Source of the DNA: Epithemia pelagica
Lineage: Eukaryota; Protista; Bacillariophyta
Direction of reading: 5' to 3'
Assembly: GCA_946965045.2 (NCBI GenBank)
Contig: CAMPTO020000001.1
Location: 1-15,400, forward strand
DNA length: 15,400 bases
The notes under the pieces are model-generated. The model saw only the letters and a program-made list of their open reading frames with translations, was not told the origin of the DNA and did no database searches. Position numbers and translations under genes: made by a program. Positions 1-15,400 of this stretch are shown here, piece by piece. Within the stretch, counting starts at the first letter, position 1, and each line of letters begins with the position of its first letter.

Positions 1-549
1 AACCCTAACCCTAACCCTAACCCTAACCCTAACCCTAACCCTAACCCTAACCCTAACCCTAACCCTAACCCTAACCCTAACCCTAACCCTAACCCTAACC
101 CTAACCCTAACCCTAACCCTAACCCTAACCCTAACCCTAACCCTAACCCTAACCCTAACCCTAACCCTAACCCTAACCCTAACCCTAACCCTAACCCTAA
201 CCCTAACCCTAACCCTAACCCTAACCCTAACCCTAACCCTAACCCTAACCCTAACCCTAACCCTAACCCTAACCCTAACCCTAACCCTAACCCTAACCCT
301 AACCCTAACCCTAACCCTAACCCTAACCCTAACCCTAACCCTAACCCTAACCCTAACCCTAACCCTAACCCTAACCCTAACCCTAACCCTAACCCTAACC
401 CTAACCCTAACCCTAACCCTAACCCTAACCCTAACCCTAACCCTAACCCTAACCCTAACCCTAACCCTAACCCTAACCCTAACCCTAACCCTAACCCTAA
501 CCCTAACCCTAACCCTAACCCTAACCCTAACCCTAACCCTAACCCTAAC
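1..549. repeat. Telomere, (CCCTAA)n / (TTAGGG)n, about 91 perfect units, left chromosome end
   Basis: Uninterrupted CCCTAA array from base 1 to ...ccctaac at 549. C-rich strand on plus, the polarity expected for a left chromosome end. Confidence 0.99.
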
Positions 550-1505
550 GATTTCTGGAACAAGTCGGTTTGGAAACTTGGTGAATGTGTAGGTCGTATT
601 TGCTCCAGCATGTGACCCACTTTCCCTTGTACCATCAAATACCAAAAGCTTCGACCGAAAATTTGCTGGGACCATTTTCACATGAATTGGAGGGCCATGC
701 AACAACCACTTCTCTCCAAAATCATAGAAAAACTTGAGTATGGGTTCGTTGACTTCATCTTCGCCGGTAGTGGTTGTCAGAGAAAGCAAATTTTCCATCC
801 GTTCTTGAAAGGTTGCTCCATCTGGCTTGGAAGAGTAGTGTTCCTCCTGAGCCAATGGATGAAACAAAGGAACAAAACAATCAACCATCTCCTCAGATAC
901 CATATGGAAAGTTTGGGTGACCGCTCTCTTTGTTTTCAAGATTGGATCCTCTTGGGAATATTTCATACTGACAGCAGTAATAGATACCAGCCTCCCACAA
1001 GAAGTGACCTGTAATTGTTCCCTCTCAGGCCCAATGGCTCCACAGGAGTTAGGTGAGGAGAGATGACACATATCATTGCTGAGTCTTGTCCAAGAACAGA
1101 CCTCCCCGTGAAGAAGTTTTTTGCGGTATGAGGGTCTTCTTGCAAAATTTGCTCAAGGGACTGCTTTCTTGCAACAAGGAGTCGGTTGTCAGTTGCTGAG
1201 ACACAGACTCCATGTTGATTTAGATGCCGCTGCATGGACCAAAGACTTTCTCCGAATGATTGCTTGCATATGCCCCATCCCATACCAAAGGGTGTCACAA
1301 TTGTAGCATCTAAACATGACAAGCCAATGCCCTGATCGGAACGGATCTTCTTCACAGGCCGTCTCCGGGATGGAGATGGCGTTCCAGGCCCATTGTTGGT
1401 AGCCATTGCTGGTTTGCTCGTGTGCATGGAACAGAGGAAGAGACATAACCAGCCGACTCTCAAGCAAAAGCAAGGATGGGCCTCTTTGCAAGAGTCATAA
1501 TTCAT
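550..1505 (-). pseudogene. A1: 5' fragment of a putative telomere-linked helicase-like gene (N-terminal Zn-finger region), frameshifted and truncated by the telomere
   Basis: ORF 963..1505 is shifted out of frame by a 28-bp deletion relative to A2. My translation of the downstream frame has no stop from ~1085 to the telomere: ...QVTSCGRLVSITAVSMKYSQEDPILKTKRAVTQTFHMVSEEMVDCFVPLFHPLAQEEHYSSKPDGATFQERMENLLSLTTTTGEDEVNEPILKFFYDFGEKWLLHGPPIHVKMVPANFRSKLLVFDGTRESGSHAGANTTYTFTKFPNRLVPEI|VRVR... The ORF track misses it because it never meets a stop. The helicase-family link is inference from similarity to B and co-location with fragment C. Confidence 0.75.
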
Positions 1506-1524
1506 GAAACAACAATGACCTTTT

Positions 1525-1593
1525 GTTGGGCCAATTGAGGTTTTCAGGTGAAGATGTTGGGCCTATTGAGGTTTTCAGGTGAAAATGTTGGGC
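1525..1593. repeat. 31-bp tandem repeat x2.2 just upstream of the A gene (also at 4950..5018)
   Basis: GTTGGGCCAATTGAGGTTTTCAGGTGAAGAT, GTTGGGCCTATTGAGGTTTTCAGGTGAAAAT, GTTGGGC. Confidence 0.9.
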
Positions 1594-1682
1594 GCGAAGG
1601 GGCACGCAGGCAAGCTTTTCGCGCCAAAGAATGGGGGAACAACTAAGAGTGCGGTAATGGTTAGTAATCAATGAAATTTAGG

Positions 1683-1900
1683 ACTCATATTGAATATGAG
1701 TGCTTAGAAATTAGACTTGAGCGGGGCATAGACATTCTGTGCTCATCTGCACAAGGGGCAGTGCTCTTTTGCAACAAAAGGCATATATATCAGTGCTCAT
1801 ATGCACAGATACTATAGCCCCTTGTGCTCATATGCACATGTTCAAATCCTACGGTGTCTAGTACTAAAGACACCCAAAAAAGGCAAATATCCTTAGGGGA
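1683..1900. repeat. Subterminal palindromic motif array and terminus of unit A
   Basis: ACTCATAT-TGA-ATATGAGT at 1683-1701. GTGCTCA(T/C)-type motif GTGCTCATCTGCAC at 1739 and GTGCTCATATGCAC at 1793 and 1824, with a degenerate copy at 1761. GTGTCT-AGTACTAA-AGACAC at ~1855-1874. Ends in CCTTAGGG(GA). Confidence 0.85.
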
Positions 1901-3037
1901 CTCACCGAGTTCTTGAGCGGCAACTCCACATGATTTCAACCTCAAGCCATTCTTCGTCTTAGTGAACAACCTCTGCCAAGAGAACAGTAACACTACCCCT
2001 GAGTCGGACCAACAATAAATCTCACTGTCGAGTACCAACTCTGTCAGGAGTGACCCAAGAACACAATTTTGGAATGCAGTGTCCACAGAGAATCCATCAC
2101 CTTCAACCTGGCAGCAAAAATAGTCCCATCTCTTCCACTGCCTCTGATGCAGGAAACACAAGAGAGAGAGGAGTAGAGGTTTCACTCGTTTGTCATAATC
2201 ATGTCGATGGCTGAAATTCCATGAGTGATCCACATCACCATCATGGAAAGCAAACTAAGCAATCGGACTCCGAATGTCTGCTGGAATCCCCATTACGATC
2301 GAAGTCATCCTGTCCAGAAGGTGACAACCAACCTGATAGAGTCGGTTGATTGCAGTGTTATTTCCTCTCTTATGATACTTGGCTTCAAACATAATTCCTT
2401 GTTCAATGTCTCCAAGGGTATTCTCCAACGTGCCAGGAATCATATTACTCAGTACATCGGGCCACCTTCCCAAAGTGTCGCTTGGATGCAATAATGGTTC
2501 AATCGAACTTGCAAACTCGTTGGGTAACCTGCTGCAGGGCAGCGGCATGGTGAATATTGAATTCTCAACTTGAATTATTGGGGTCCAGTTGGTTTCTTGC
2601 TGCATGGTTTCTCTTTGGGGCCTTGGCATGAAGCATCCTCACTTCAGCTTGAGGAAAGTCTTGGCAATGACTTTGGCACTAGCGCAACAACCAGCAACGT
2701 GCTTCTCGCACAAAAGCTTCACATGAAACATCTTGTCACAGTCACTACAGAAATACTTGATTCTTGTATCATTTGACTCATGAATGAAACAATCAAACGG
2801 TTGGTTGTTGGCATTCTCCACAAGAGTGTGTATTTTGTTACCAAGATGTCTCCCAGGAAAGCGAAAGGACACCCCATGAATTTTGGAGCAGGTCTTGGCG
2901 TGGGGGGCAAGACACTTCATGTTTGCTCGGAAACCACCACCACAGAGCTTACAGACCAAGCCACAGGGTGTGGCAAAGTCCACAAGCCCCAAGTAATCGT
3001 CAAACTCCATGGTGGCTGTTGTCATTCCTATGGTCAA
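1901..3037 (-). pseudogene. B: 5' fragment of a divergent paralog of the A gene, two in-frame stops, truncated at the unit A terminus
   Basis: ORFs 2639..3037, 2255..2629 and 1790..2233 are one frame joined across TGA (2641-2639) and TAG (2257-2255). It aligns by eye to A: TPCGLVCKLC vs KPFGMGCGIC; KLK*GCF vs VTSCGRL; IEPLLHP vs FVPLFHP; RLYQVGCHLL...IPADIRSPIA*F vs FFYDFGEKWLL...VPANFRSKLLVF. After ELGES (~1901) the ORF runs into non-coding unit A terminus. Confidence 0.8.
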
Positions 3038-3201
3038 AATAGGTTTGGGACGTATGACCCTTTGCAGCCAAAAAAGAGGCCCTAAAGAGGGTCATTCACC
3101 TCAAAAACTGAAAAGGCCCTAACACCAGAGATCATTCACCTCAAAATCTTTGAGCGACAAGAAGGAATATGGTTTACTATGGAGAGCTAATGTAGGTTTG
3201 C

Positions 3202-3368
3202 AAATCGACCTTCTTGTGGTGGAAATCGACCTTTTTGTGGTCGCACTAAAAGTTCGCACGCAACAATACAGTGATTCAAAATTGACCTTTTTGTGGTCGC
3301 GCATGTGATTCTACAGAATGAACTTAGTGCGCACGACAAAAAGGTCGATTTCTAGCAAAACCCTTAGG
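3202..3368. repeat. Subterminal repeats and terminus of unit B
   Basis: AAATCGACCTT(C/T)TTGTGGT(CGC) at 3202 and 3223, AAATTGACCTTTTTGTGGTCGC at 3279, and an inverted copy CACGACAAAAAGGTCGATTT at ~3332-3351. Followed by AAAACCCTTAGG (3357-3368). Confidence 0.85.
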
Positions 3369-3990
3369 TCTGTCAAGACGATTCGGATTGGAGGTGGATT
3401 GCTGTGGTGTGTGTGATTGGTGTGTTGAACAATCAAATCAAAGTGGACACTCCAGAGTCAGGGAGAGGGTCAGGAATGAAGACATTGATGCGGAAAAGGC
3501 TGAATCCTATCTGGCAAGGCTTACAAGAGAATGCATTGTGTGCAAGGAGGCAGGATGCAATGGTGAAAGCTGTCTGCCCTATGGAGCATGCTTCAACTGT
3601 GGTCAGCCAGGTCACCAGAGAGGACAGTGCCGAGTTGATTTCCGAACAGTCTTGAGCAACAAGGCCTGCTTTTACTGCTTTGATGTGTTCAGCAGGCGCG
3701 GCTACTAGCAACACCATCCCAGTGCATGTCCTTTACAATGAAGATTGAAGCGGCTGATGATCGATGTATATGAGTCAAGGAAGACCAATGGACAATCCAG
3801 AGCAATGACTGATTTCATGTCCGAAGTAACATGCGACAGCCATTTGTTTCATGCTTTTCTGTGTCAGAGTGTTGAACAACGGATGGGCATGACAGTGACA
3901 CAGACACCTCATGCAACCACAGCAGCCAGACCATCTGTGGCACGACCAGCTCTACCAAGGAATCCATATGCAAAGAAAGCATTCAAGTAG
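3367..3990 (+). pseudogene. C: 3' fragment of a RecQ-type helicase gene (RecQ Zn-binding motif, further Cys clusters, CCHC zinc knuckle), two in-frame stops
   Basis: One frame from the junction: GLSRRFGLEVDCCGVCDWC (resembles the RecQ Zn motif ...L..YFG...C..CDxC), then CIVC...C...C, CFNCGQPGHQRGQC (CX2CX4HX4C), CFYC, RRGY*QHHPSACPLQ*RLKRL...RNPYAKKAFK*. This joins ORFs 3388..3708 and 3745..3990. No ATG and no helicase motifs upstream; the frame starts at CCCTTAGG. Confidence 0.75.
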
Positions 3991-4191
3991 ATCGTATTAA
4001 GTTAGTAGTTACAATGTGTCGGGTTAAAGACCATCATCAAAAGACCCATAGAAGAGTCATCTCACAAAAAATCTAATCACGTCTCACAAAAAAATATTAG
4101 GCCCAAAGAAGGGTCATTTCACACAAAAATCTGACCCAGTCACACTTGAAGTGACGGGAACTGAAACTAGTCGAGCTAGGACTAACTAATT

Positions 4192-4314
4192 AAAAGGCAT
4201 ATATATCAGTGCTCATATGCACAGATACTATAGCCCCTTGTGCTCATATGCACACGTTCAAATCCTACGGTGTCTAGTACTAAAGACACCCAAAAAAGGC
4301 AAATATCCTTAGGG
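4192..4314. repeat. 123-bp partial third copy of the unit A terminus
   Basis: Matches 1776..1898 and 5202..5324 from AAAAGGCATATATATCAG to AAATATCCTTAGGG. Confidence 0.97.
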
Positions 4315-4930
4315 TGACCGCTCTCTTTGTTTTCAAGATTGGATCCTCTTGGGAATATTTCATACTGACAGCAGTCATAGATACCAGCCTCCCACAAGAA
4401 GTGACCTGCAATTGTTCCCTCTCAGGCCCAATGGCTCCACAGGAGTTAGGTGAGGAGAGATGACACATATCATTGCTGAGTCTTGTCCAGCCAACAAGAC
4501 ACCTGCAGGAATATCCAAGAACAGACCTCCCCGTGAAGAAGTTTTTTGCGGTACGAGGGTCTTCTTGCAAAATTTGCTCAAGGGACTGTTTTCTTGCAAC
4601 AAGGAGTCGGTTGTCAGTTGCTGAGACACAGACTCCATGTTGATTTAGATGCGGCTGCATGGACCAAAGACTTTCTCCGAATGATTGCTTGCATATGCCG
4701 CATCCCATACCAAAGGGTTTCACAATTGTAGCATCTAAACATGACAAGCCAATGCCCTGATCGGAACGGATCTTCTTCACAGGCCGTCTCCGGGATGGAG
4801 ATGGCATTCCAGGCCCATTGTTGGTAGCCATTGCTGGTTTGCTCGTGTGCATGGAACAGAGGAAGAGACATAACCAGCCGACTCTCAAGCAAAAGCAAGG
4901 ATGGGCCTCTTTGCAAGAGTCATAATTCAT
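4312..4930 (-). pseudogene. A2: 5' fragment of the A gene, frame intact but truncated after ~206 codons
   Basis: ORF 4280..4930 contains CGIC-x13-HLNQH, YSCRC...CH and CGR. After KRAVT the ORF leaves the A coding sequence (compare A1) and reads into the 123-bp terminus copy (LRIFAFFGCL*). Confidence 0.8.
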
Positions 4931-5326
4931 GAAACAACAATGACCTTTAGTTGGGCCAATTGAGGTTTTCAGGTGAAGATGTTGGGCCTATTGAGGTTTT
5001 CAGGTGAAGATGTTTGGCGCGAAGGGGCACGCAGGCGAGCTTTTCGCGCCAAAAGAGTGGGGGAACAACTAAGAGTGCGGTAATGGTTAGTAATCAATGA
5101 AATTTAGGACTCATATTGAATATGAGTGCTTAGAAATTAGACTTGAGCGGGGCATAGACATTCTGTGCTCATCTGCACAACGGGCAGTGCTCTTTTGCAA
5201 CAAAAGGCATATATATCAGTGCTCATATGCACAGATACTATAGCCCCTTGTGCTCATATGCACACGTTCAAATCCTACGGTGTCTAGTACTAAAGACACC
5301 CAAAAAAGGCAAATATCCTTAGGGGA
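4312..5326. repeat. Direct repeat unit A, copy 2 (1015 bp)
   Basis: Pairs with 915..1900 and carries the extra 28 bp CCAGCCAACAAGACACCTGCAGGAATAT. Confidence 0.97.
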
Positions 5327-5352
5327 TCAAGTCAAGAACCAACTTGACTTGA
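5327..5352. other. Perfect 10-bp inverted repeat at the boundary between mosaic and unique sequence
   Basis: TCAAGTCAAG-AACCAA-CTTGACTTGA begins on the first base after CCTTAGGGGA. Confidence 0.85.
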
Positions 5353-5994
5353 CGAGTGGCGAGACTGACTCTGATGCACCGCTGCTCCACCGATGATCGC
5401 GCCATAAATTTCTGCCCTTTATCAACTGCCAATCGATAGCCCCGAACTTATTCGTGCTGCCAACCAAAGACCAAGCGGCAATATCCGACGAGGAACGAGG
5501 AGACTGGACCTGTCACCGCAGCAGCATCATTGCAGGGTTTGTCATTTTCAATAATTTTCAATGTCACTGAATGTGCCGGATACAAAAGAAACTTTTTAGG
5601 AGGTGGTAGCAGGATTCACCAACTGCTCGTTTTGCTTGGCCAGTAGTTTCGGATGGAGCATCGGAATCTTGCGTCCCTGGAAGCCCTCTTCGATTCTCGT
5701 CAATGCCAAACTATCGGAATCGGTAAGAAGAGAGGGAAGGGTAACGAGATTGTTGTTGCGGTTTGCGGTGGTGGTAAGGTTATCGCTTGGTGGAAAATCT
5801 CTCCCAATGGGTTTGCACCAAGTCAAAGGAGTGCGTCATGGGTCCATCGGTCGCGTCAGGGCGACGGGCGAGGGTTCGGAATTCGGAAAGAGGAAAAAAG
5901 AACCCTGAATACAGGAGGCACTTCTCAAAGACGACACAAACCAACAAGCCACTAAAACTACGTGGATTGGCGGCAACGATTGCCATTCGTCTCC

Positions 5995-8900
5995 ATGGCG
6001 ACAGTGTCATCCTCCCCTTGTCCTCCTCATCAACAACGATTGATCATGACGACCCAAGGGAGATTGGACGAACATGACGATATTTACACTCTACTTCAAA
6101 AGAGAATTTCACAAAACAACCGGACCTTGCAAAAACAGACGGAATCGGTCCTTTATGCGGCAACTACTACGACTACTAACACCACACTGATGAATCACAA
6201 CATGAATTATACCGCTCCACACCATGCTGCATCGCGACATGCTGTGGATGGAGGATCAGCACCGGATCAAAGTCACAGCGTGGCGGGTAGCAGCAAATGT
6301 AGTAGTAAGAGCCGTGAGTTGGGGAGCTTGTGGTGGAGCAGTAACAAGAGCAGTGGTGTCGGTAGCAGTGTTTCCTCCATGACTTTTACCACGCACGATT
6401 CCCGGGCGCAGCAGCACCAGCAACGACAACGCGAGACGGCTCGGCGCATGGCACAAGCCTATCAAAAGGGACAAGAGCAAATGGCGCTCCGGCGCTGGAT
6501 GGCACAGAATACCAAACAACAAGGCTTGGCCACCCGGCGTGAATGGATGCAAAAATCTAGAGAATTGCAACAACAACAGCATCAGCGTATGGCGCAACAC
6601 CACCATTCAGAAGAACATGACGACAGCATTCGAGGACGACCAGGACAAGGAGGCGAGAGTGGCATCTCTGCGCTTTCGAATCGAAAAAGTCAATCCACCA
6701 ATACCACCACGGAACGACGACGGTCATTCCGCATGTCACGTCGCGGATCTACCGGAACCAGTCCTGCAGTCGCACAGTCCCCCAGTATCCAACCAGACAA
6801 CAATGCCAAGTCTTTTTCACCCTCATCTGTCATTGGAACACCCGCAATGGAGGCTGGCTCGGCATCATGGTTCCCTCATTTCAACCACAATCCCGATGGC
6901 AAACCCAACAACACTTTTGGGCAACCCGATGTTACTGTCATGTCAACCAGCAGCCAGAATGAGCACCACCAACAGGATGCTTCTTCTCTAGTATCACGAG
7001 CCACAAGAAAAATGACTCGACGGGGGTCGACTGGCAATTTACCACTTTCATCCCCTGGCACCATGGCCTCGTCGCCAAGCAATCTTTTTTTGTCAAATGT
7101 GCCAGCTCACTCCCAGCAGTCAAAGCACGATCCTGGTCATCATCATTATCCAGATTCTAATGACAACACTACGGAGTCCAGTAACACCTTGTTGTTAGAT
7201 CATATAGGTGGAGAAGAGCCAGCTGACATGGAAAGCGAGACAATGGTCCACGAGTCGGATTCTTCCAGCACTTCAGGGCTGTCAGATGAGCCGACTACCG
7301 TCCTAGGAAAAGATGCAACAACCATACCATTTATCCATCAGGACACAACCCCAGAACCTCCAACGCCTGGTTGTGCTGCTGCTACTACAGATGGTACAAT
7401 CAATCGCGACGATGAGACATTGCTAGAGATGTTGGCCACCCCATTGTCGTCCTCTTCCTTCCTGACAGACAAATGTAAAGAAACGGAAATGGAGCAAATA
7501 ACCCAGCATTCGTCCAAAGAGTCCCAAGCATAGCCACTGGTGGTTGGAAGTGTGTTTGTGGACGACGATCAAGATGAGTTTTATGATTGCTTGTCCGTCA
7601 TTCTGGAAGAGCAAGAACAAGAACCTTGTTCCAGTGACAATGAAGACACTTCTGAGATGGACCATGTGAGTTTGGTACGAGCCATGGAGGCTGGAGATTC
7701 ACCAGTGCTGCTGCCATTGACACTTGTAATGTCCCAAGGTCGAGAAAAAGACGATGGCAGCACAAAAAATCATTCAACGAGTTTTCAGGAAAAAGAACCA
7801 CTTGCAACCTCTCGCGAGGAGTTCGCCGATCCAAAGTGGACCGAATCACCCAAGTCAAACAACACGCTTAAGGACACCAATTTGCAATGCCGACATCACC
7901 AACCACCGCCACTAGCACCCGCCAAAGGGTACGGACAAGTTGCTGTTGTTCCAACGGAGCATCCCAGTGACACAGTGCCCCATTGTGGGACGGAAATCTC
8001 GGGCCCCACCAGATTGCTGAATGACTCCACAAATTTCCCACAACAATTCAACTCGGACCATCCCACAATTGGGAATTCATCGAACCGCAGCCGACAGCAT
8101 CATCTAGATCATGTCGACTCACAGCAGCAACAAGACGATGAATCCAGCAGTGCATGCAAGGATGACACTGGACAGGGTACTTGTGGTCCGATTCTAGCTG
8201 GTAGCCATGATGACTGTGACAAGAAAGACAAAGAACGCAACTCGGAGACGTCCAATGACAACGAACAAGGGGCGTTTGTGGGCCGTCGAAACATGGATCA
8301 TGCGCCTCCAACAAAACCAAACGAGCCATCACCGCCTTTGGGCATACAATCCAAGGAGGAAAGAAGTGCAATAGGTCCACCAGAAGACAAGAAGCATGAT
8401 GAGGAGAAGGAGTACCCGACCGCTGTGTCGGACAAGACTCCCCTCGAAGGAACTGTTGTTCCTCACAAACTAGTGAAATCAGTGACCAGAACCCCTCGTC
8501 TCCAGCGACGCCGCTCCATGGGATCCTCCGTATCTCTAGCTTCCATGGATTCCCAGAAAAATTCTCTTTTCCAAGAAAATATGTCATTGCCATCGTCTTC
8601 ATCTCGAATGGCCGCCAATTATCGACTCTCCGTCGCCAAGCCAACGCATTGCTACGCCAACACGAATTGGTACACCGTCAGGCATGGGCCACCCAAGCGA
8701 GACGACAAAAAATGCCCGAAGACCAAGGGTCCATTCGGAGCATGCCGTCCGTGTCAGTCAGGAGGGGAACCTCGTGCCTGTGCACGCTACGGTTGGTAGA
8801 GATGACAAGGCTCGTGAATTATTGTCACCAAGGCGGTCCTTTGCATTACAACCTCCTGTTGGTCCATTGCAAGAGCCAGAACAGTTGCCTTCAAGTCCAG

Positions 8901-9907
8901 CACAAGCACAAGCACAACCACAAGTACAACAGCGACGACGACCTGGTCGCATGGCCCGCCGACGATCCACTGGCAATTGCTCGATACCTGTTGAAGCAGG
9001 CAATCCAGAAATGGATGAAACGAATCAGCAGATACTGTTGATGGACCGAGATGACAAGAACCGGAATTTGCCTACCCCAACGACGACGGGACAACCACCA
9101 GCGACGAGAAGAAAGTCGTTATCCGCATTGGGCATGAACGGCAGTGTCCACAAGCAGCAAAAGGAACATTCAACTACCACCAGCCTGGAGAAAACTAGCA
9201 ACCGCCACCAGGATGCCACATCGACTCGACAACGTGCTAGTGCGGGTCGTGGTGTACAAATGGCTCGTCGCAAGTCTACCGGTGGACTGGACTTCGAAGC
9301 ACAACCCGCAAACGCAAACAAAGCAACCATTCGATATGATGCCAGTGAGCCTTTCCATACACAAACAAGTGTTGTAATGGATAGTAATTCTCCGTCACTG
9401 CTACGAAGAGTGGGCCGAGTGAATTCCTTTCGTTCGTTTGCCTGCGATCCAGACGAATCGGAACAACACCAAATGCCCAACGAGCTCGTACCGACGCAAC
9501 AACCACAAGAACCTCAACCACAACACGATCGACAAGAGAACAAGCAGGAATTCTGCGATTCTTTTACTCCTGGTTCCGGTCCATTTCATCGGTGTCCATC
9601 CTGGGGCAATCTATCCGCCACATCCTCGCTGACCGAGTCGGTCGTGTCCGTGACGAAACGGGAACGCCAACAAGAATCACAACGACGCATGGCCCATGCC
9701 TACCAAAAGGGTCAAACGGAAATGGTTCTCCGTCGAGCGGTGGAATTGGAAACACGACAACGTTACTTGGCCGCACGACGAGCCTGGGTCGTCGACTCTT
9801 CGTCTCGCCAGTTTCGTCGTTTTTCGGCTTCTTCGTCCTCCTTGGCGTTTCGCGAGGACTCGATTGAACGAGCCGACTTGGCCCGTTCGTCTTTTCATCA
9901 GGAATGA
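5995..9907 (+). pseudogene. Large S/T/Q/H-rich, probably disordered protein (~1300 codons) interrupted by a TAG at 7531-7533 and a +1 frameshift near 8610; function unknown
   Basis: ORFs 5962..7533 and 7540..8799 are in the same frame across one TAG. Removing one G at 8610/8611 gives ...SSSRM|PPIIDSPSPSQRIATPTRIGTPSGMGHPSE..., continuous with ORF 8684..9907. The same ~42-aa motif occurs near both ends and MxRRxSTG recurs in the first and last parts. Two separate genes or assembly errors cannot be excluded. Confidence 0.65.
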
Positions 9908-10110
9908 ATGCCCAAAGAGGAGATTGGCCAGTGGCATTGGCATGACATGACGTGGAGTAACTCCACGACGGAAAGCCAGTCGTATTAGATCCCAAATCCT
10001 TGTTTCCTGGAGCTTGTGAGGATTGCCTATATCCTCCGGTAACTTGGATTGTTTTATATTTTAGATAGAGTCCATACAGTTCTGGCTAAAGGGTTCATGT
10101 AACCTTAGTA

Positions 10111-10703
10111 AGGGCTGGGTAAGCCGATCCATGTTCGGCTAAGTAGGCTCAGTACATTAAGCTACGTAGTACTATTTTCATCACTGTAACAAGTGGGGCG
10201 AATGGTCACAAATCGAAAACTTGCTGCCACGAGAAACAATGCAATCCGGAAACCATCACTCGACAATGGTCGAAGAAATCACCCCCATGGCAATAACTTC
10301 ATGGATAATTGAGCCTGCTTGAATCACTTTTAGAATAATACTCTTGAATACTAGAGCAACTATGGTTTCAATTTGATTCAGTCACCGTTGAGAAATGAAT
10401 GAGTTAGGAAGGTTTTTGATTACATCACCAGTATACCTTTTGATCCAACGCGACAAATCTTCTGTAGCTGCAGAACACAGTAATACTAGCAAACTCAAAC
10501 AACTTACAGTAGTAGGATGTTGATGCGATGCATCGGTAAATGCATGCGGCATCAACGGATCTCGCCGTCATCGTGCAGTGTTTTTGCATTTTTTCGGACT
10601 TCCCACCATTTCAGGTATGACGTGTACTATGGGATTTTATGTACCCTACGTAGCTTTGGTACTGAACCTACTTAGCCGAACATGGATCGGCTTACCCAGC
10701 CCT
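10111..10703. mobile_element. MITE / non-autonomous DNA transposon, 593 bp, ~59-bp TIRs, TA target-site duplication
   Basis: Left TIR 10111..10169 and right TIR 10646..10703. The first 37 bp are perfectly inverted (AGGGCTGGGTAAGCCGATCCATGTTCGGCTAAGTAGG). TA lies at 10109-10110 and 10704-10705. AT-richer interior with no ORF in the track. Superfamily not assignable from this alone. Confidence 0.9.
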
Positions 10704-11262
10704 TAGCACTAGGAATTTACACACCTCTCGCGCTTGCTCCATCCCCCGAATGGATAGCCCCCCGAATGGCTAGAGTGGGGGTGGAAACCGGATTTTTTCG
10801 TTGGGGGCGGTCCAGACTTTCCTGTCTTTCGTTTGGGGGCATCCCCCCAAGCATTCGTCTTGGGCCTTCCCCCATTCTCTTAGTACTTTGTTCGCCATAC
10901 TACTTATCAACTGCAGTTTGCAGTTGCCGCAGCGAATGCATTCTCTCCGTGGTTGGGCCTTTTTCTCTCATCCCCCACAACGGCTGTCCGTGGCGCAGAC
11001 AAAACAACCAAATGGTTTTGGTAGTACTGTTTGGCTCTGTAGAGAAAGAGGGTTACCATCAATGTGAGATCGACGAAAATTGCGAACTGAAAATCTCCAT
11101 CACCGTTCAGCCACCCTCACAGATCCAACCATTGCAACTACCGACTTCTCGTTTGACACTTGTCGCACTCTACGAGAGAAAGAGACGTTGCAAAAGACTT
11201 GGCGTGTCTTTGAGAAACGACACAGCGAAGAAGAAGAACCGAGAAGCAAGAAGCAAGAGACC

Positions 11263-11451
11263 ATGATGGAACACGCGAGTACCAACACGGCCATTGCGAC
11301 AGCCACCCCCAAGTCGTCAAGCAACAGTCACAAGGCAACCACAACGACGACAACTTCCCAAACGGCCAAAACGACGGCAACCTACATTCCCACTTCGGAA
11401 GAATTGACGCAAGCCATTAAAGCCATTGTCGATTCGAATCAAGATACCAAG
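11263..11451 (+). CDS. Exon 1 of a hypothetical single-pass membrane protein
   Basis: First in-frame ATG of ORF 11080..11952. T/S-rich start, ending ...EELTQAIKAIVDSNQDTK at the consensus donor AAG|GTACGT. Confidence 0.75.
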
Positions 11452-11533
11452 GTACGTCAAAAGCGAGAAAGACTGCGTGTGTTTGTCGGTCTGGACCGCT
11501 TCTCTCATAAGAAATCTTTTTTTCGTTTCACAG
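11452..11533 (+). other. 82-bp phase-0 spliceosomal intron
   Basis: GTACGT donor and TTTTTTTTCGTTTCACAG acceptor. Splicing joins the frame of ORF 11080 to the frame of ORF 11426. Confidence 0.85.
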
Positions 11534-12979
11534 ACCCCCTTGTCCGTGTCGCAAGTGCAGGCCCAACTCCTCAAGGAGCATCCCACCTGGAATGTGACGC
11601 ACCATCGAACCACGCAATGTGCCGAACAAGTCAACCTAGTCGCCCTGTCGTCGTCGTCCAAAACCTCGAAGGCCCCCTTGGTGCTTCCCCTCGTCACGGG
11701 GGACAACAATCCCCATCCAGTCGCCGCTGTCGACGACGATGCCGTCTCGGCCTCGTCCACCTTGACGGGTTCGACGCTCAATGGTGGCAGCAAATCCTCC
11801 AAGAAGAAGAACAAGACTCACAAATCTTCCACCAAACTACCGGCCAAGCGCACCACGACCACTCCTACTCCAACGACGACCAACACCACTCCATCCTCCC
11901 CCTTTCGTTTTCGGTCGTCGCCCTCGCGCAGCAAATCGACCACCAGCTGTAGCAACAACAGTTCCTCGCCGGCTCCCACCTTTCGACAACGATTCTTTTC
12001 CTTGCCCTCGTCACCCTTTCGAACGGCCACGACTTCTCCACGTAGTAATACTGCTCCATCCACACCCACCAAAAAGACGCCCACTACTCCTACTACTATT
12101 GGTAAAGCCCAAGCGACCAAGCCCCACGAAAAAGCTGCTGTGACTTCTTCCGCTGCAGTTCTTTCCAAACAAGCTTCGGCCAAAGCCAACAACAAGAAGC
12201 AGCCAGAACCATCGACGGTCGAAACCAAGAAGACGGACAAGAAGGAAGAACCAAAGACTGTGGAGGATGTTTCCTCCTCCTTGGTAGAACCACCTGTCTT
12301 GGAGAAAAAGGTGGTGAGTTTTGACCACCACGAACTTGGTGCCGACGTTGCGAAGAACAACACCCCGGAAGCAACTGGTGAAAAAGCCTCGGTCGTTGTC
12401 GACGTGCAACAGCAAGATTCCTTTACTCGTGTGCAGTCTCGGGCGCGTGCCGTCCTGCTCATTGTCGCGGCACTCCTCTTGCTGCCCGTCACAACCCTCG
12501 TGTTGGTCAGTAGTGGTAGTAGTAACAGCCCCAAGGCCGAACCAGCGGTGGTGGTCCCCGAGCAAGAATCACCACGAGAGGAACCCGCCATTGCTTCACT
12601 CTTTTCCGTGGCCTATTGGTGGGGTTCATCCCCCGTGGATCCTGTGGTACCAAACGACGAACAGGAACAACCGGTTCCTGCTCGCTCCTCCTCCACCTGG
12701 TCCTACGTCTGGTCGTTTGTTCCGTCGTCTTCCACAACTAAGGACGCAACTGTGATTCCTCTCAAACAAGAAGAGGTGCCACCCGCTCATCCGTCACCCT
12801 CCTCCTCGTATTGGTCCACCTTGACGGGATCGCGCAGCAGTTATCACGATGAACCAACAACAACCACAACCGTGGAACCGTCTTCTCCAGCCACTGATGC
12901 CACTCCCTCTCGGACATTTTCCCAGTATTGGACTTCGTCGTCGTCCTCGTCGGATGCACAAGATACGGCACCCAACTAG
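11534..12979 (+). CDS. Exon 2 of a hypothetical single-pass membrane protein (~544 aa spliced)
   Basis: Open frame TPLSVSQVQAQLLKEHPTWNV...DTAPN*. S/T/P/K-rich linker, hydrophobic segment AVLLIVAALLLLPVTTLVLVS, and an acidic P-rich tail with Trp-containing repeats. Confidence 0.8.
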   Translation, partial: TPLSVSQVQAQLLKEHPTWNVTHHRTTQCAEQVNLVALSSSSKTSKAPLVLPLVTGDNNPHPVAAVDDDAVSASSTLTGSTLNGGSKSSKKKNKTHKSSTKLPAKRTTTTPTPTTTNTTPSSPFRFRSSPSRSKSTTSCSNNSSSPAPTFRQRFFSLPSSPFRTATTSPRSNTAPSTPTKKTPTTPTTIGKAQATKPHEKAAVTSSAAVLSKQASAKANNKKQPEPSTVETKKTDKKEEPKTVEDVSSSLVEPPVLEKKVVSFDHHELGADVAKNNTPEATGEKASVVVDVQQQDSFTRVQSRARAVLLIVAALLLLPVTTLVLVSSGSSNSPKAEPAVVVPEQESPREEPAIASLFSVAYWWGSSPVDPVVPNDEQEQPVPARSSSTWSYVWSFVPSSSTTKDATVIPLKQEEVPPAHPSPSSSYWSTLTGSRSSYHDEPTTTTTVEPSSPATDATPSRTFSQYWTSSSSSSDAQDTAPN

Positions 12980-13825
12980 TCATGGAGAGTCTCGAAACAA
13001 CAGAGTCATGCGGGTACTCGGAACCGTCGTCCATGTCTCTCTACTCTATTTTATATTTGTAACTGAATTGAACCCTGGGGAAATACTAGTATAGGAACGA
13101 ATTATTTGTTCTTCTTTAATGGTCTGCCGAACGACTCCATCAAGAGTCGAACGAGGCAACGAGTCCAGTTGCATGTTTTGGAACGAACATGTAGGCTTAT
13201 TCCAACAGGACGGGAACGTGCCAAGGAAAACGTCGTGCCGGAACAACAACCAGGCACCTCAGCAGATCGTGTTTGGTATTTGTCCATTCCAAATGGACCA
13301 GAGTCAGCCCTTCTGGTCCGAGGAAATTTGGATAGATGATACATGTCTTCGAATAGTTTCGTAGGCCATTGGTTCTTTGGGTTGGACTATACCGAGAAGG
13401 TTAATCCAGCCCAACTGGACGGTTCCAGTCGCCAGAGAACACGATTCTTCTCCAATCTCCAAACGCGTTCTCACAGACCAAACGAAAAAGTACCATGCCA
13501 TCCAGAGGTGCGAGGGGTGAGAAAGTCCCTCCAGCCAGTCGTTCGGAATCATCCTCCTGCAGGTTGTCCATACCTTTGCTAGCTAGAGGTATAGGGGGAG
13601 TACTTGCTTTCTCGAGTGGTGGAGACAAGAAACATACAAGTTATTACAACAGCTATTAAAATCCTATGAATCACTCTTTGTGTATAATGTACTGTATGCA
13701 GAAGAAAATGTGTGGAGAAACTTCATTCCACGCCCTTTTTTTTGTGTGCAGAGGTATACAGGGGTCCGAACGTTTGGTTCCAAACAAGACAAGAGACGCT
13801 TCGGGAGGAGAAACGTACCGATCCT

Positions 13826-13827
<2 letters not shown>

Positions 13828-13870
<43 letters not shown>
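13828..13870. repeat. (TC)21 microsatellite
   Basis: Perfect TC dinucleotide run. Confidence 0.98.
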
Positions 13871-13877
<7 letters not shown>

Positions 13878-13884
13878 TTGGTTA

Positions 13885-14745
13885 TTAGTTGGTCATGGCT
13901 TGTTCTTCCTCCTCATGAGGATTCCGTTGCAACAACCAGGACCAGGCATTGCTCGCAAAGGAAGTGGTTGTTGTCGTTGGCTCATCTGGTTGGTCTTCCT
14001 CCTCCTCTTCCACAACGTCGTCATAGTGTTGCAACACAAAGGGACGCGAGGCGGCCGTTTGCGGGGGATGCAACTCGTCCAAGACGTGTTGTCCCGTCAG
14101 AGATTCGAACCGCTTGGGCATGGGCAAAGTAGTGGTAAAGAGAGTGGGCACATCGTGCCAATGCCAATGGCCCGTGGTAAATTCCTGCGCCAATCGTGTC
14201 GAGACATGTTCCAACTGTTCTCGCGTCGAATGGGTGCCATTGTGCGCGAGGCACCACCACCAGAGCAAGGCCACCAAGCCGCCCGTGGTGGCCAACAGTG
14301 TCACGAATCCCCACCACGACGATTGTTCGGCGGCAATCATTAAATCATCGAAAAAGGAACTGGGTTCGCGTCGCAACGGAGTTGTTGTCTTGGTGGTGGT
14401 TGGCTGGTCGGTCTTGTTGTTCTTGGTTGTTGGTTCGTCCAACACAATGTCATCGTCAGGTGTCACAATCCCAAAAATCATGGTCTTGTTGTGATCGTTG
14501 TTGTCGTTGGTTCAAGAAAGGGTCCGTTTGTAGGAGTTGAACGTTGTGTTTGTTCTTCTAAAAGTTTGTTTGTAGTATGCGATTGTGGGAACAAGGAATG
14601 GATCGTTCGACCCTTGCCTTGCGCCTCGAGACGAACCATCTGCTGCTGGTGGTTGGTTCTCATTCTTTCGTTTCTCCTCCTCCTCGTAGTAGTCTATTGT
14701 AGAGAGTGTGACAATGGTTCTCGTTTCATCCAGGTGCATCATCAT
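13885..14745 (-). pseudogene. Hypothetical single-pass membrane protein with one in-frame TGA (14514-14512); alternatively an intact 198-aa CDS from ATG 14481
   Basis: ORFs 14512..14745 and 13885..14481 share a frame: ...KRTLS*TNDNNDHNKTMIFG... Hydrophobic segment WWGFVTLLATTGGLVALLWWWCL and an acidic T-rich tail. Confidence 0.6.
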
Positions 14746-15294
14746 GGATCATGCTTCTCTTGTTCCTCGTCAACACAACGATCGATATGGTCGGTCCTGA
14801 CACCTTGGTTCGCTTCCACCGATCCACAGACTTTCTGCCTTGTTTTAGAGAACCCAGATTCGCCGGGGGGGGGGGGATTTGGGGGAGAGAGTTCGATGAA
14901 CGATCCGGCCCAACGCGAAACATAATATGTGACGCATGCCCACGTGGCATTCGGAAGGCGCGCGGGAATTAAGGCAAGTAAGAACGCACGCCGGCTTATT
15001 CTGATTCGCACGCCTTCTCCACATGCGCGCGCCAAACACTCCCCTCTTTGGCGACGCTGCGATTGGCGACGACTTGTTGCCGCCAAAAAGCATTCTCAGC
15101 CCCCAAACTCAAACTGACTCGGCCATCCATTCAATCTCCTTGTTACGCACCTTTCATTTCGCGCTCGTTCCAGAGATTCCGCCAAGTTCCATACATTGCT
15201 TGAGATTGCTTGAGATTGGTGTCTCTCTTCTGGAACGACCACGATCGAGAATCTGTATCCTCTTGAATTTGCCATCAAGTCCAATCGTCCATCT

Positions 15295-15371
15295 TCAGGC
15301 TCTATTGAAACGACGAATCGCAAGAACGAGATTCATTGATTGACGAATCCGAAACAGAGCTCGAGTCAAAT
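15295..15371 (-). CDS. Possible terminal exon of a gene continuing beyond the window
   Basis: Acceptor-like TTGTTGTGTGTGTCTGTTGCAG ends at 15372 on the minus strand. Two frames are plausible: LTRALFRIRQSMNLVLAIRRFNRA* (stop 15297-15295) or FDSSSVSDSSINESRSCDSSFQ* (stop 15304-15302). Confidence 0.3.
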
Positions 15372-15400
15372 CTGCAACAGACACACACAACAAGAACTCA

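Follow-up and report, generated by a model that had tools for sequence, protein, structure and literature searches.

Subtelomeric stacks of telomere-linked helicase-like cassettes that share a fixed terminus in the diatom Epithemia pelagica

How does a chromosome end come to be built from different pieces that all meet at one short motif? This question is raised by the left end of contig CAMPTO020000001.1 of the diatom Epithemia pelagica (assembly GCA_946965045.2), of which we analyzed positions 1-15,400 (15,400 nt, referred to here as the window) and in which a stack of repeated units, named A, B and C, occupies positions 1-5326. For comparison we used five other chromosome-end pieces of the same organism (L001, L003/L006, L007, L008 and L009), which were retrieved from a public long-read assembly via relatives of the protein encoded by the outermost unit, A1, and whose A copies are 95-99% identical to those of the window. 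Our results showed that the subtelomere is a polar stack of cassettes that resemble telomere-linked helicase (TLH) genes, each unit having a precise terminus on its centromere side and a truncation on its telomere side. We consider it about an even bet that a recombinase encoded by the cassettes joins and exchanges them at the core of this terminus and thereby replaces chromosome ends.

Outside the telomere, CCTTAGG occurs four times in the window (at 1891, 3362, 4307 and 5317, always on the plus strand), and every copy coincides exactly with the right-hand edge of a homology block, i.e. with a unit joint, as the original prediction had claimed from the letters of the window. By itself this count is weak, as shuffled sequences are expected to contain 1.2 copies and 8 of 200 shuffles reached four. 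We therefore rely on a census of the window and the five loci (six contig ends), in which unit starts were determined by mapping every locus onto a library of reference units. It added 44 joints to the four of the window, giving 48 joints with 40 distinct pairs of left and right partners, and all 48 take the form ..CC^TAAG[GT].., where the caret marks the joint. Different left partners were found for each terminus: 10 for A, 8 for D, 6 for A' and 4 each for B and F. Reuse of one end against unrelated partners, which had been held to speak against random ectopic recombination, was thus borne out. Unit starts were not scattered: nearly all homology blocks, about 40, begin at unit position 1-3, and essentially no unit without its terminus (5'-truncated) was present in the window and the five loci. 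Exact CCTAAGG stands in the orientation of the units 39 times in the five other loci and once in reverse. This sole reversed copy of the stacks (L007, 5394-5400) lies within the antisense Helicase_C open reading frame (ORF) of a D/C unit, with the arms of a short inverted repeat, GGAAAC..GTTTCC, on either side.

An assembly artefact, or a chance coincidence of a 7-mer with repeat edges, might be suspected from the window, where the count is four against 1.2 expected and three joints are not independently bridged. However, joints of this type number 48 across six contig ends, and the orientation of the motif is biased 39:1 in the five other loci. In addition, a contig of single-copy depth bridges the 5326 joint, and single long reads comfortably exceed the unit lengths of 0.05-4.5 kb. 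We find this explanation barely credible, and for the phenomenon as a whole it is excluded.

To the left of the joint, the 40 distinct pairs have a C at position -1 in 40/40, at -2 in 39/40 and at -3 in 32/40 and an A at -4 in 16/40, and farther upstream the sequence is random. Nineteen joints allowed the recipient to be compared with an intact copy, and in all 19 the bases left of the joint were native to the recipient. Across their breakpoints native A reads ..GGTCACCC^AAAC, native B ..GAGTCCCC^CTTT and native C ..CAGACCT^TGTA. The identity of the recipient with ACCCT(A) amounts to 2-5 nt at 18 of the 19 joints and to 1 nt at one doubtful joint. The element contributes only (T)AAG[GT] onwards, and the CC(C)(T) half comes from the recipient; joining therefore needs a few identical bases beside a fixed donor point. 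Because this half is recipient-native, the telomere unit and the interrupted palindrome CCTNAGG that the original prediction had read in the motif are composites. Likewise, the scatter of the A end within 2 bp vanishes, since the extra TCCCC at 1900 belongs to the recipient B, which in L006 runs on past TCCCC. The replaced native sequence at the 4314 joint, predicted to be TTTGGG from positions 912-917, was found as claimed.

Moreover, one recipient breakpoint, at A position 1014 (GGTCACCC), is joined to three termini: in the window its partner is A, and in L007 its partners are F and A'. It is unlikely that erosion repeatedly reached exactly that base, and this three-partner breakpoint favors a site-specific exchange of everything distal between two termini. 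The outward strand at the core reads CCCTAAGG, telomere repeats amount to at most one unit at 48/48 joints, and no poly(A) tracts were seen at the joints. Two candidate origins were rejected. A P-nucleotide or hairpin-opening origin of the CCTNAGG palindrome is ruled out by the native recipient sequence of its left half, and nested insertion would leave mirrored 3' remainders, none of which were seen (single cases may still fit it).

What this terminus belongs to is seen at L008, a complete chromosome end in which ordinary genes are followed by eight truncated units and then by a full-length A cassette. Here the terminus (9510) precedes an intact gene of 1,306 codons (10001-13921), which lies 3.7 kb from (TTAGGG)n and is followed by about 20 copies of a 179-bp satellite (14015-17528), with the telomere added inside a satellite repeat. 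In L006, a full-length B gene is followed by a related 178-bp satellite (14175-17588), about 65% alike to that of L008. The order of a cassette, as seen at L008, is therefore the terminus (C)CC^TAAG[GT], about 170 bp of motifs, a promoter-like region, the gene, the 179-bp satellite and the telomere. At L007, a 5.4-kb block of five truncated units (A-F-A''-D-A-A') stands in tandem duplicate (6634-17317) with A termini at its edges. Proximal to the first terminus of the L006 stack lies a reversed fragment of an F unit (L006 2-258, F positions 105-360). We also rejected three further candidates: L009, an 8.3-kb contig, as a free linear element (it is another stack fragment); a terminal inverted repeat (TIR) model with a D terminus at both ends of an element, as the two D-type units have only 19 nt in common; and ORF 4441-5550 of L001 (369 amino acids, in a unit beginning CCTAAGGATTACC), which has no relatives in Pfam, PDB or Atlas and is probably not a gene.

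In the window, the order from centromere to telomere is unique DNA, A2, A3 with C (4314 to 3369), B, A1 and telomere (Table 1). Self-comparison aligned A1 (912-1900) with A2 (4309-5326) at 95.6% identity, and the A end occurs in triplicate (1776-1898, 4192-4314 and 5202-5324). A1 was broken at 550 and healed by telomere addition within the A gene; at the healing point (550-560, compared with L006 7153-7190) it has a 7-bp deletion relative to native A, and the telomere begins after ..AAATCGTT. A1 also lacks 25 bp (1089-1092 versus 4489-4513 of A2) that A2 and other A copies contain; this deletion shifts the frame of A1, and A2 retains a single frame as far as its truncation. Unit B has an ATG near 3010 and in-frame stops at 2639-2641 and 2255-2257. 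Starts on the promoter side and distal truncation, which had been predicted for the A and B units, agree with the unit map. Unit C does not start on a promoter side; it is an inverted 3' gene end bearing a swapped-in A terminal module of 122 bp. Its ORFs 3388-3708 and 3745-3990 encode the C-terminal CCHC knuckle region (Pfam zf-CCHC), and tblastn aligns it to amino acids 1152-1286 of the full-length A protein (E 2e-21). It is 97.7% identical to positions 204-1026 of a reference unit with a D terminus and a C body (DcC). A3 stands in place of the D-type terminal 203 bp that precede C at three other ends; the A3/C boundary (4191/4192) is a joint without the core, and a loose end in the reads at 4190 leads into the D-type continuation. 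None of the window copies reaches the recombinase or the helicase domain, and they are dead fragments of cassettes. Accordingly, the Pfam search of the window ORFs gave the CCHC knuckle as its sole hit and found no helicase, DDE, HUH or reverse transcriptase domain.

Table 1. Features of the subtelomeric stack in the window
Feature	Position	Strand	Description
Terminal telomere array (CCCTAA)n	1-549	+	Left chromosome end
Unit A1	550-1900	-	Terminus 1900, promoter-like region, N-terminal gene part; 96% identical to L008 A cassette 1-1372
~24-nt box of A	1535-1589; also 4960-5014		Two copies between terminus and ATG
15-nt subterminal motif of A, GTGCTCAT[AC]TGCACA	1739, 1793, 1824 (within 1739-1838)		Three copies in A1
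Joint B to A1	1891-1900	+	Core CCTTAGGGGA; final five bases, TCCCC on the minus strand, native to B
Unit B	1901-3368	-	Terminus 3368, cut at 1901; 93.5% identical to full-length B of L006, positions 1-1472
Boxes related to the ~24-nt A box	B 3092-3146; C 4057-4128		
19-nt subterminal motif of B	3202, 3223, 3279 (direct); 3333 (inverted); span 3202-3351		Inverted copy beside the terminus
Unit C	3369-4191	+	3' end of helicase paralog and flank, inverted relative to A and B, cut at 3369
A3	4192-4314	-	A-type terminal module, 122-123 bp
15-nt subterminal motif of A, GTGCTCAT[AC]TGCACA	A3: 4209, 4240; A2: 5165, 5219, 5250		
Unit A2	4315-5326	-	Terminus 5326 to A position 1014; cut at native GGTCACCC site equal to A1 912-917
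Joint unique DNA to A2	5317-5326	+	Innermost joint of the stack

The inverted unit C and the polarity of the terminus bear on a different origin of the stacks, in which an eroded chromosome tip, down to its last repeat, would fuse head-on to a broken end and the resulting dicentric would break within a few kb. Followed along the strand that stops at the joint, the terminus is oriented like a junction of subtelomere and telomere (..CC^TTAGGG), the units are inverted relative to that polarity and distally truncated, and C is an inverted 3' gene end, all of which such fusions would explain. However, no end was seen with telomere repeats directly on the terminus, and at the two ends seen with their telomeres, those of the window and L008, the cassettes face outward and each telomere was added at an idiosyncratic point. 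Erosion should also leave variable repeat numbers or deletions into the terminus, which are absent from the 48 joints, and repeated dicentric breakage 0.05-4 kb from the fusion point is implausible. We therefore regard fusion and breakage as improbable.

The original prediction had called the units helicase-type, and this was supported by their relatives. Relatives of the A1 ORF that extends into the telomere (550-1152, minus strand) have 1,000-1,330 residues with DEAD and Helicase_C domains in the C-terminal third, and the unit families A, A', A'', B, D1 and E all encode paralogs of one protein of about 1,100-1,300 residues. From the N terminus, the full-length protein consists of C2H2 zinc fingers, a domain with a predicted tyrosine recombinase (YR) fold, a RecQ-like superfamily 2 helicase and CCHC knuckles. 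The fingers match Pfam OrsD (2.6e-5), zf-C2H2 weakly and, by profile, the fingers of PRDM9 (4.6e-8), and their C and H columns are invariant in the family alignment. The helicase core carries DEAD and Helicase_C in proteins P0010, P0013 and B, and its Foldseek matches are RecQ, BLM, WRN and RECQL5.

Since a model of the whole B protein was poor (predicted local distance difference test, pLDDT, 56) and recovered the helicase core only, the N-terminal part was modelled separately, from amino acids 1-730 of the A protein with an alignment of 15 sequences (mean pLDDT 80). In a search independent of Foldseek against 48,161 solved chains, this model matched XerH (Z 11.2), XerA (10.3) and Cre (10.2) best, followed by integrases, topoisomerase IB and the protelomerases TelK and TelA. 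The YR/topoisomerase IB superfamily supplied 26 of the 27 top fold hits, all aligned to residues ~427-704, and the top 36 of Foldseek were Cre, XerA/XerH and one bacterial topoisomerase IB. The family alignment contains the series G.G.G.MR..E, then K (+27), RH(F/L)WT (+77), GHS (+34) and Y (+8). R122, K149, R226 and H260 (A3 numbering) are invariant, a Y occupies the predicted nucleophile position in 8/9 members, and the first H of HxxR is not conserved. The YR assignment thus draws on the modelled fold together with these motifs, in which the R-K-R-H-Y series appears to be intact. Of the end-specific enzymes that had been proposed, a recombinase is therefore supported, by a full-length copy and by the structure prediction that had been called for, and a DDE or HUH enzyme was not found. 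Judged by protein-language features and by AlphaFold DB clusters, the N-terminal region is closest to fungal proteins of the C2H2 or 3'-5' helicase type and to two proteins without a name. The middle domain, a candidate counterpart of the fungal TLH domain, scores 0.94-0.95 by Atlas features to fungal clusters and E 1e-9 to AlphaFold DB clusters of fungal C2H2 or helicase proteins, and one fungal cluster carries the automatic name 'Tyr recombinase domain'. When named fungal relatives were sought by profile, all hits were either unnamed or labelled 'RecQ'.

The content of the cassettes also bears on an RNA-mediated addition, in which an antisense cassette transcript ending ..CCUUAGGG(U) would be reverse-transcribed from an eroded 3' end. 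End-primed reverse transcription would resemble the stacks in giving one end that is fixed, a distal end that varies and microhomology at the terminus, and CCHC knuckles are present. However, no reverse transcriptase was found in any cassette ORF, the knuckles are the C terminus of the helicase protein, the joints lack poly(A), and in most families such a template would have to run antisense to the gene. This route appears to us highly improbable.

Each cassette family has its own set of 3-5 subterminal motifs of 12-20 nt within about 170 bp of the terminus (Table 1), a layout such as that of transposon or integrase ends, which suggests by analogy that they are binding sites of a recombinase or transposase. 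The terminus, its core and the subterminal repeats are kept across families whose proteins are only ~20-50% identical. At about +200 from the terminus, a 13-nt palindrome, CATATT-C/G-AATATG, occurs at 1686-1698 and 5112-5124, and it is common to A, A', A'' and E units despite their diverged terminal regions.

To account for these findings, we propose that the cassette YR acts at the terminus core and would swap everything distal between two termini; one left partner would meet several right partners because distal parts are exchanged in this way. Less often, a terminus would be joined to a CC(C)(T) site on the outward-reading strand of a second subtelomere, one that had probably been damaged or resected, and such joins would demand only 2-5 nt of identity beside the crossover. 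In this way a complete cassette, its satellite and telomere included, would take the place of the distal chromosome end. Later terminal loss, as at 550, would truncate the cassette, and as the cycle recurs the stack would grow, so that units may be added repeatedly to broken ends.

Poxvirus type IB topoisomerase cuts at (C/T)CCTT, and its enzyme-linked 3' end joins a foreign 5'-OH strand given a few paired bases. As a lead only, we note that it shares the catalytic fold, and that on the strand whose end forms the joint TCCTT or CCCTT is read in the termini of A, B, D, E and F; the A'' terminus differs and reads TACTT. Because of this topoisomerase-IB-like fold and the (C/T)CCTT reading of most termini, we speculate that an enzyme-linked 3' end could be attached to the 5' end that resection leaves at a chromosome end, followed by fill-in. 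In the most specific form of our proposal, which we hold to be possible rather than probable, the cassettes would be a new class of self-encoded, DNA-based mobile element that builds chromosome ends. Its finger-YR-RecQ protein would read its own subterminal repeats, cut CCCT^AAGG and, by way of a covalent link between protein and DNA, transfer the cassette together with satellite and telomere to the end of another chromosome with only 2-5 nt of pairing.

Several points weigh against a role of the recombinase. That the YR domain is active, that it makes the joints, the order of the events and any free intermediate are what we infer from the anatomy of the stacks. The domain could be domesticated, non-catalytic or regulatory; no Pfam Phage_integrase match was obtained in 15 members, and no sequence match to solved YRs in PDB. 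Recipient sites have only CC(C)(T)(A) in common with the terminus, and the targets contain no classical two-arm core site; this limited sharing is equally expected from microhomology-primed repair. Reciprocal YR exchange with a pseudo-site should yield 5'-truncated units, which were not seen in the window and the five loci, so that such exchange has to be supplemented by assuming a free donor copy or one-strand transfer. Finally, confirmation of the joints by reads succeeded in part: the innermost joint at 5326 is spanned by a single-copy-depth contig (5292-5616) with 0 differences, but for those at 1900, 3368 and 4314 the support comes from the assembly.

The word depth of the unit sequences is ~10-40x that of the unique flank, contigs of public runs track the majority copies, and the intact A, B and D continuations appear as loose ends at 554, 1896, 4190 and 4312; a word search across the joint at 1900 sampled only 4 words. 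Biofilm and marine-sediment metagenomes contained parts of the units at low depth, and in one of them intact A sequence runs across the position of the 4314 joint of the window, so related natural strains exist without that joint. A Joint Genome Institute (JGI) metagenome scan with the A terminus gave no match.

A competing explanation is that host microhomology-primed repair starts at the CCCTAA-like cassette boundary and copies a donor end as far as the telomere, the YR being irrelevant (domesticated, regulatory or dead). The 2-5 nt of recipient identity, fading with distance from the crossover, are typical of a microhomology joint, reciprocal products were not seen, and at L008 the complete cassette extends to the telomere. 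There is also a precedent in yeast, where pseudo-rolling-circle microhomology-mediated break-induced replication in cis (cis-mmBIR) uses a short (~7-bp) internal telomere-like seed, which fixes the proximal boundary of the appended terminal copies (PMC13515017). However, microhomology of 3 nt is ubiquitous, yet 48/48 joints use one donor point. The yeast seed is telomere-polar and its joints contain expanded telomere tracts, whereas the diatom seed has the opposite polarity, so that a G-overhang would be unable to prime outward copying as in yeast, and no joint exceeds one repeat unit. Repeated erosion would hardly give one left breakpoint with three right termini, and the terminus, core and subterminal repeats are conserved among families with diverged proteins. 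We judge host repair to be an unlikely explanation, though one to be taken seriously.

Exchange by a cassette-encoded recombinase can also be set against known systems. TLH families of fungi and of Monosiga brevicollis are multi-copy genes adjacent to telomeres, whose products combine C2H2 fingers with a 'TLH domain' and RecQ motifs (bioRxiv 10.1101/2024.02.27.582403). The diatom genes are alike in adjoining terminal telomere repeats and in encoding C2H2 fingers and a RecQ-type helicase. They differ in that the literature searched, of which our coverage is partial, describes for no TLH family a fixed proximal terminus, a core motif or a polar truncated stack, and does not describe the 'TLH domain' as a recombinase; the same literature holds no paper linking TLH genes to tyrosine recombinases and none on TLH genes in diatoms. 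In yeast, the Y' gene is transcribed toward the telomere, as is the gene of the diatom cassette, but in Y' arrays telomere tracts, oriented as at a normal telomere, act as separators.

Cryptons are eukaryotic YR DNA elements without reverse transcriptase whose joints lie at 4-6 bp of identity between element and target, with CryptonS in oomycetes and a diatom (PMC3212892). A recombinase and short identity at the joints are common to both systems. However, a Crypton carries one short direct repeat at both of its ends, can insert at any place and lacks a helicase, whereas the diatom cassette has one conserved terminus, a site at the chromosome end, a fixed orientation and a fused RecQ-like helicase. 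The two-ended structure with direct repeats does not occur here, the distal side being satellite and telomere added at variable points.

Endogenous nimaviruses of crustaceans encode telomere-repeat-specific tyrosine recombinases with a C2H2 domain (PMC10871703), and resemble the diatom system in this domain and in a YR tied to telomere-repeat sequence. They are whole viral genomes inside (TAACC)n with repeats on both sides; in contrast, the diatom cassettes have no flanking array, CC(C) targets in subtelomeric DNA and truncated copies. HeT-A, TART and TAHRE, as well as the Athena Penelope-like elements, likewise form polar head-to-tail arrays at chromosome ends, with one fixed and one eroded end, and rebuild ends. 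These Drosophila and rotifer elements, however, are RNA-mediated and attach by their 3' ends, whereas the diatom cassettes lack a reverse transcriptase and have the fixed end upstream of the gene in most families. Helitrons (HUH Rep with Pif1, 5'-TC and CTRR-3' ends, and a hairpin) were ruled out, given the YR fold, the RecQ-like helicase and a hairpin of A that is not conserved in A' or A''.

Beyond the stack, the window contains a 597-bp intergenic segment (10109-10705) with inverted repeats of 47-61 nt that are 98% complementary, which resembles a small TIR element of the miniature inverted-repeat transposable element (MITE) kind, and a (CT)n microsatellite of ~45 bp (13826-13870).

Telomere-linked helicase genes have been known for more than 20 years at the chromosome ends of fungi and a choanoflagellate, without a mechanism. 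The present results probably extend the family to diatoms, assign to the putative counterpart of its unexplained middle domain a predicted tyrosine recombinase fold with intact-looking catalytic residues, and provide a precise conserved terminus with dozens of independent joints. The puzzle of a helicase at the telomere thus becomes a testable question: does the cassette protein cleave its own terminus and join it to other DNA? In that case, recombinase-driven end replacement would account for the 'TLH domain' of the telomere-linked helicases in fungi and the choanoflagellate, perhaps also for the origin of yeast Y', and the cassette system would be a DNA counterpart of HeT-A/TART. It would then be the first DNA-based (recombinase) system for rebuilding chromosome ends, acting as a backup or a parasite of telomerase, and a natural tool for the end-specific joining of DNA.

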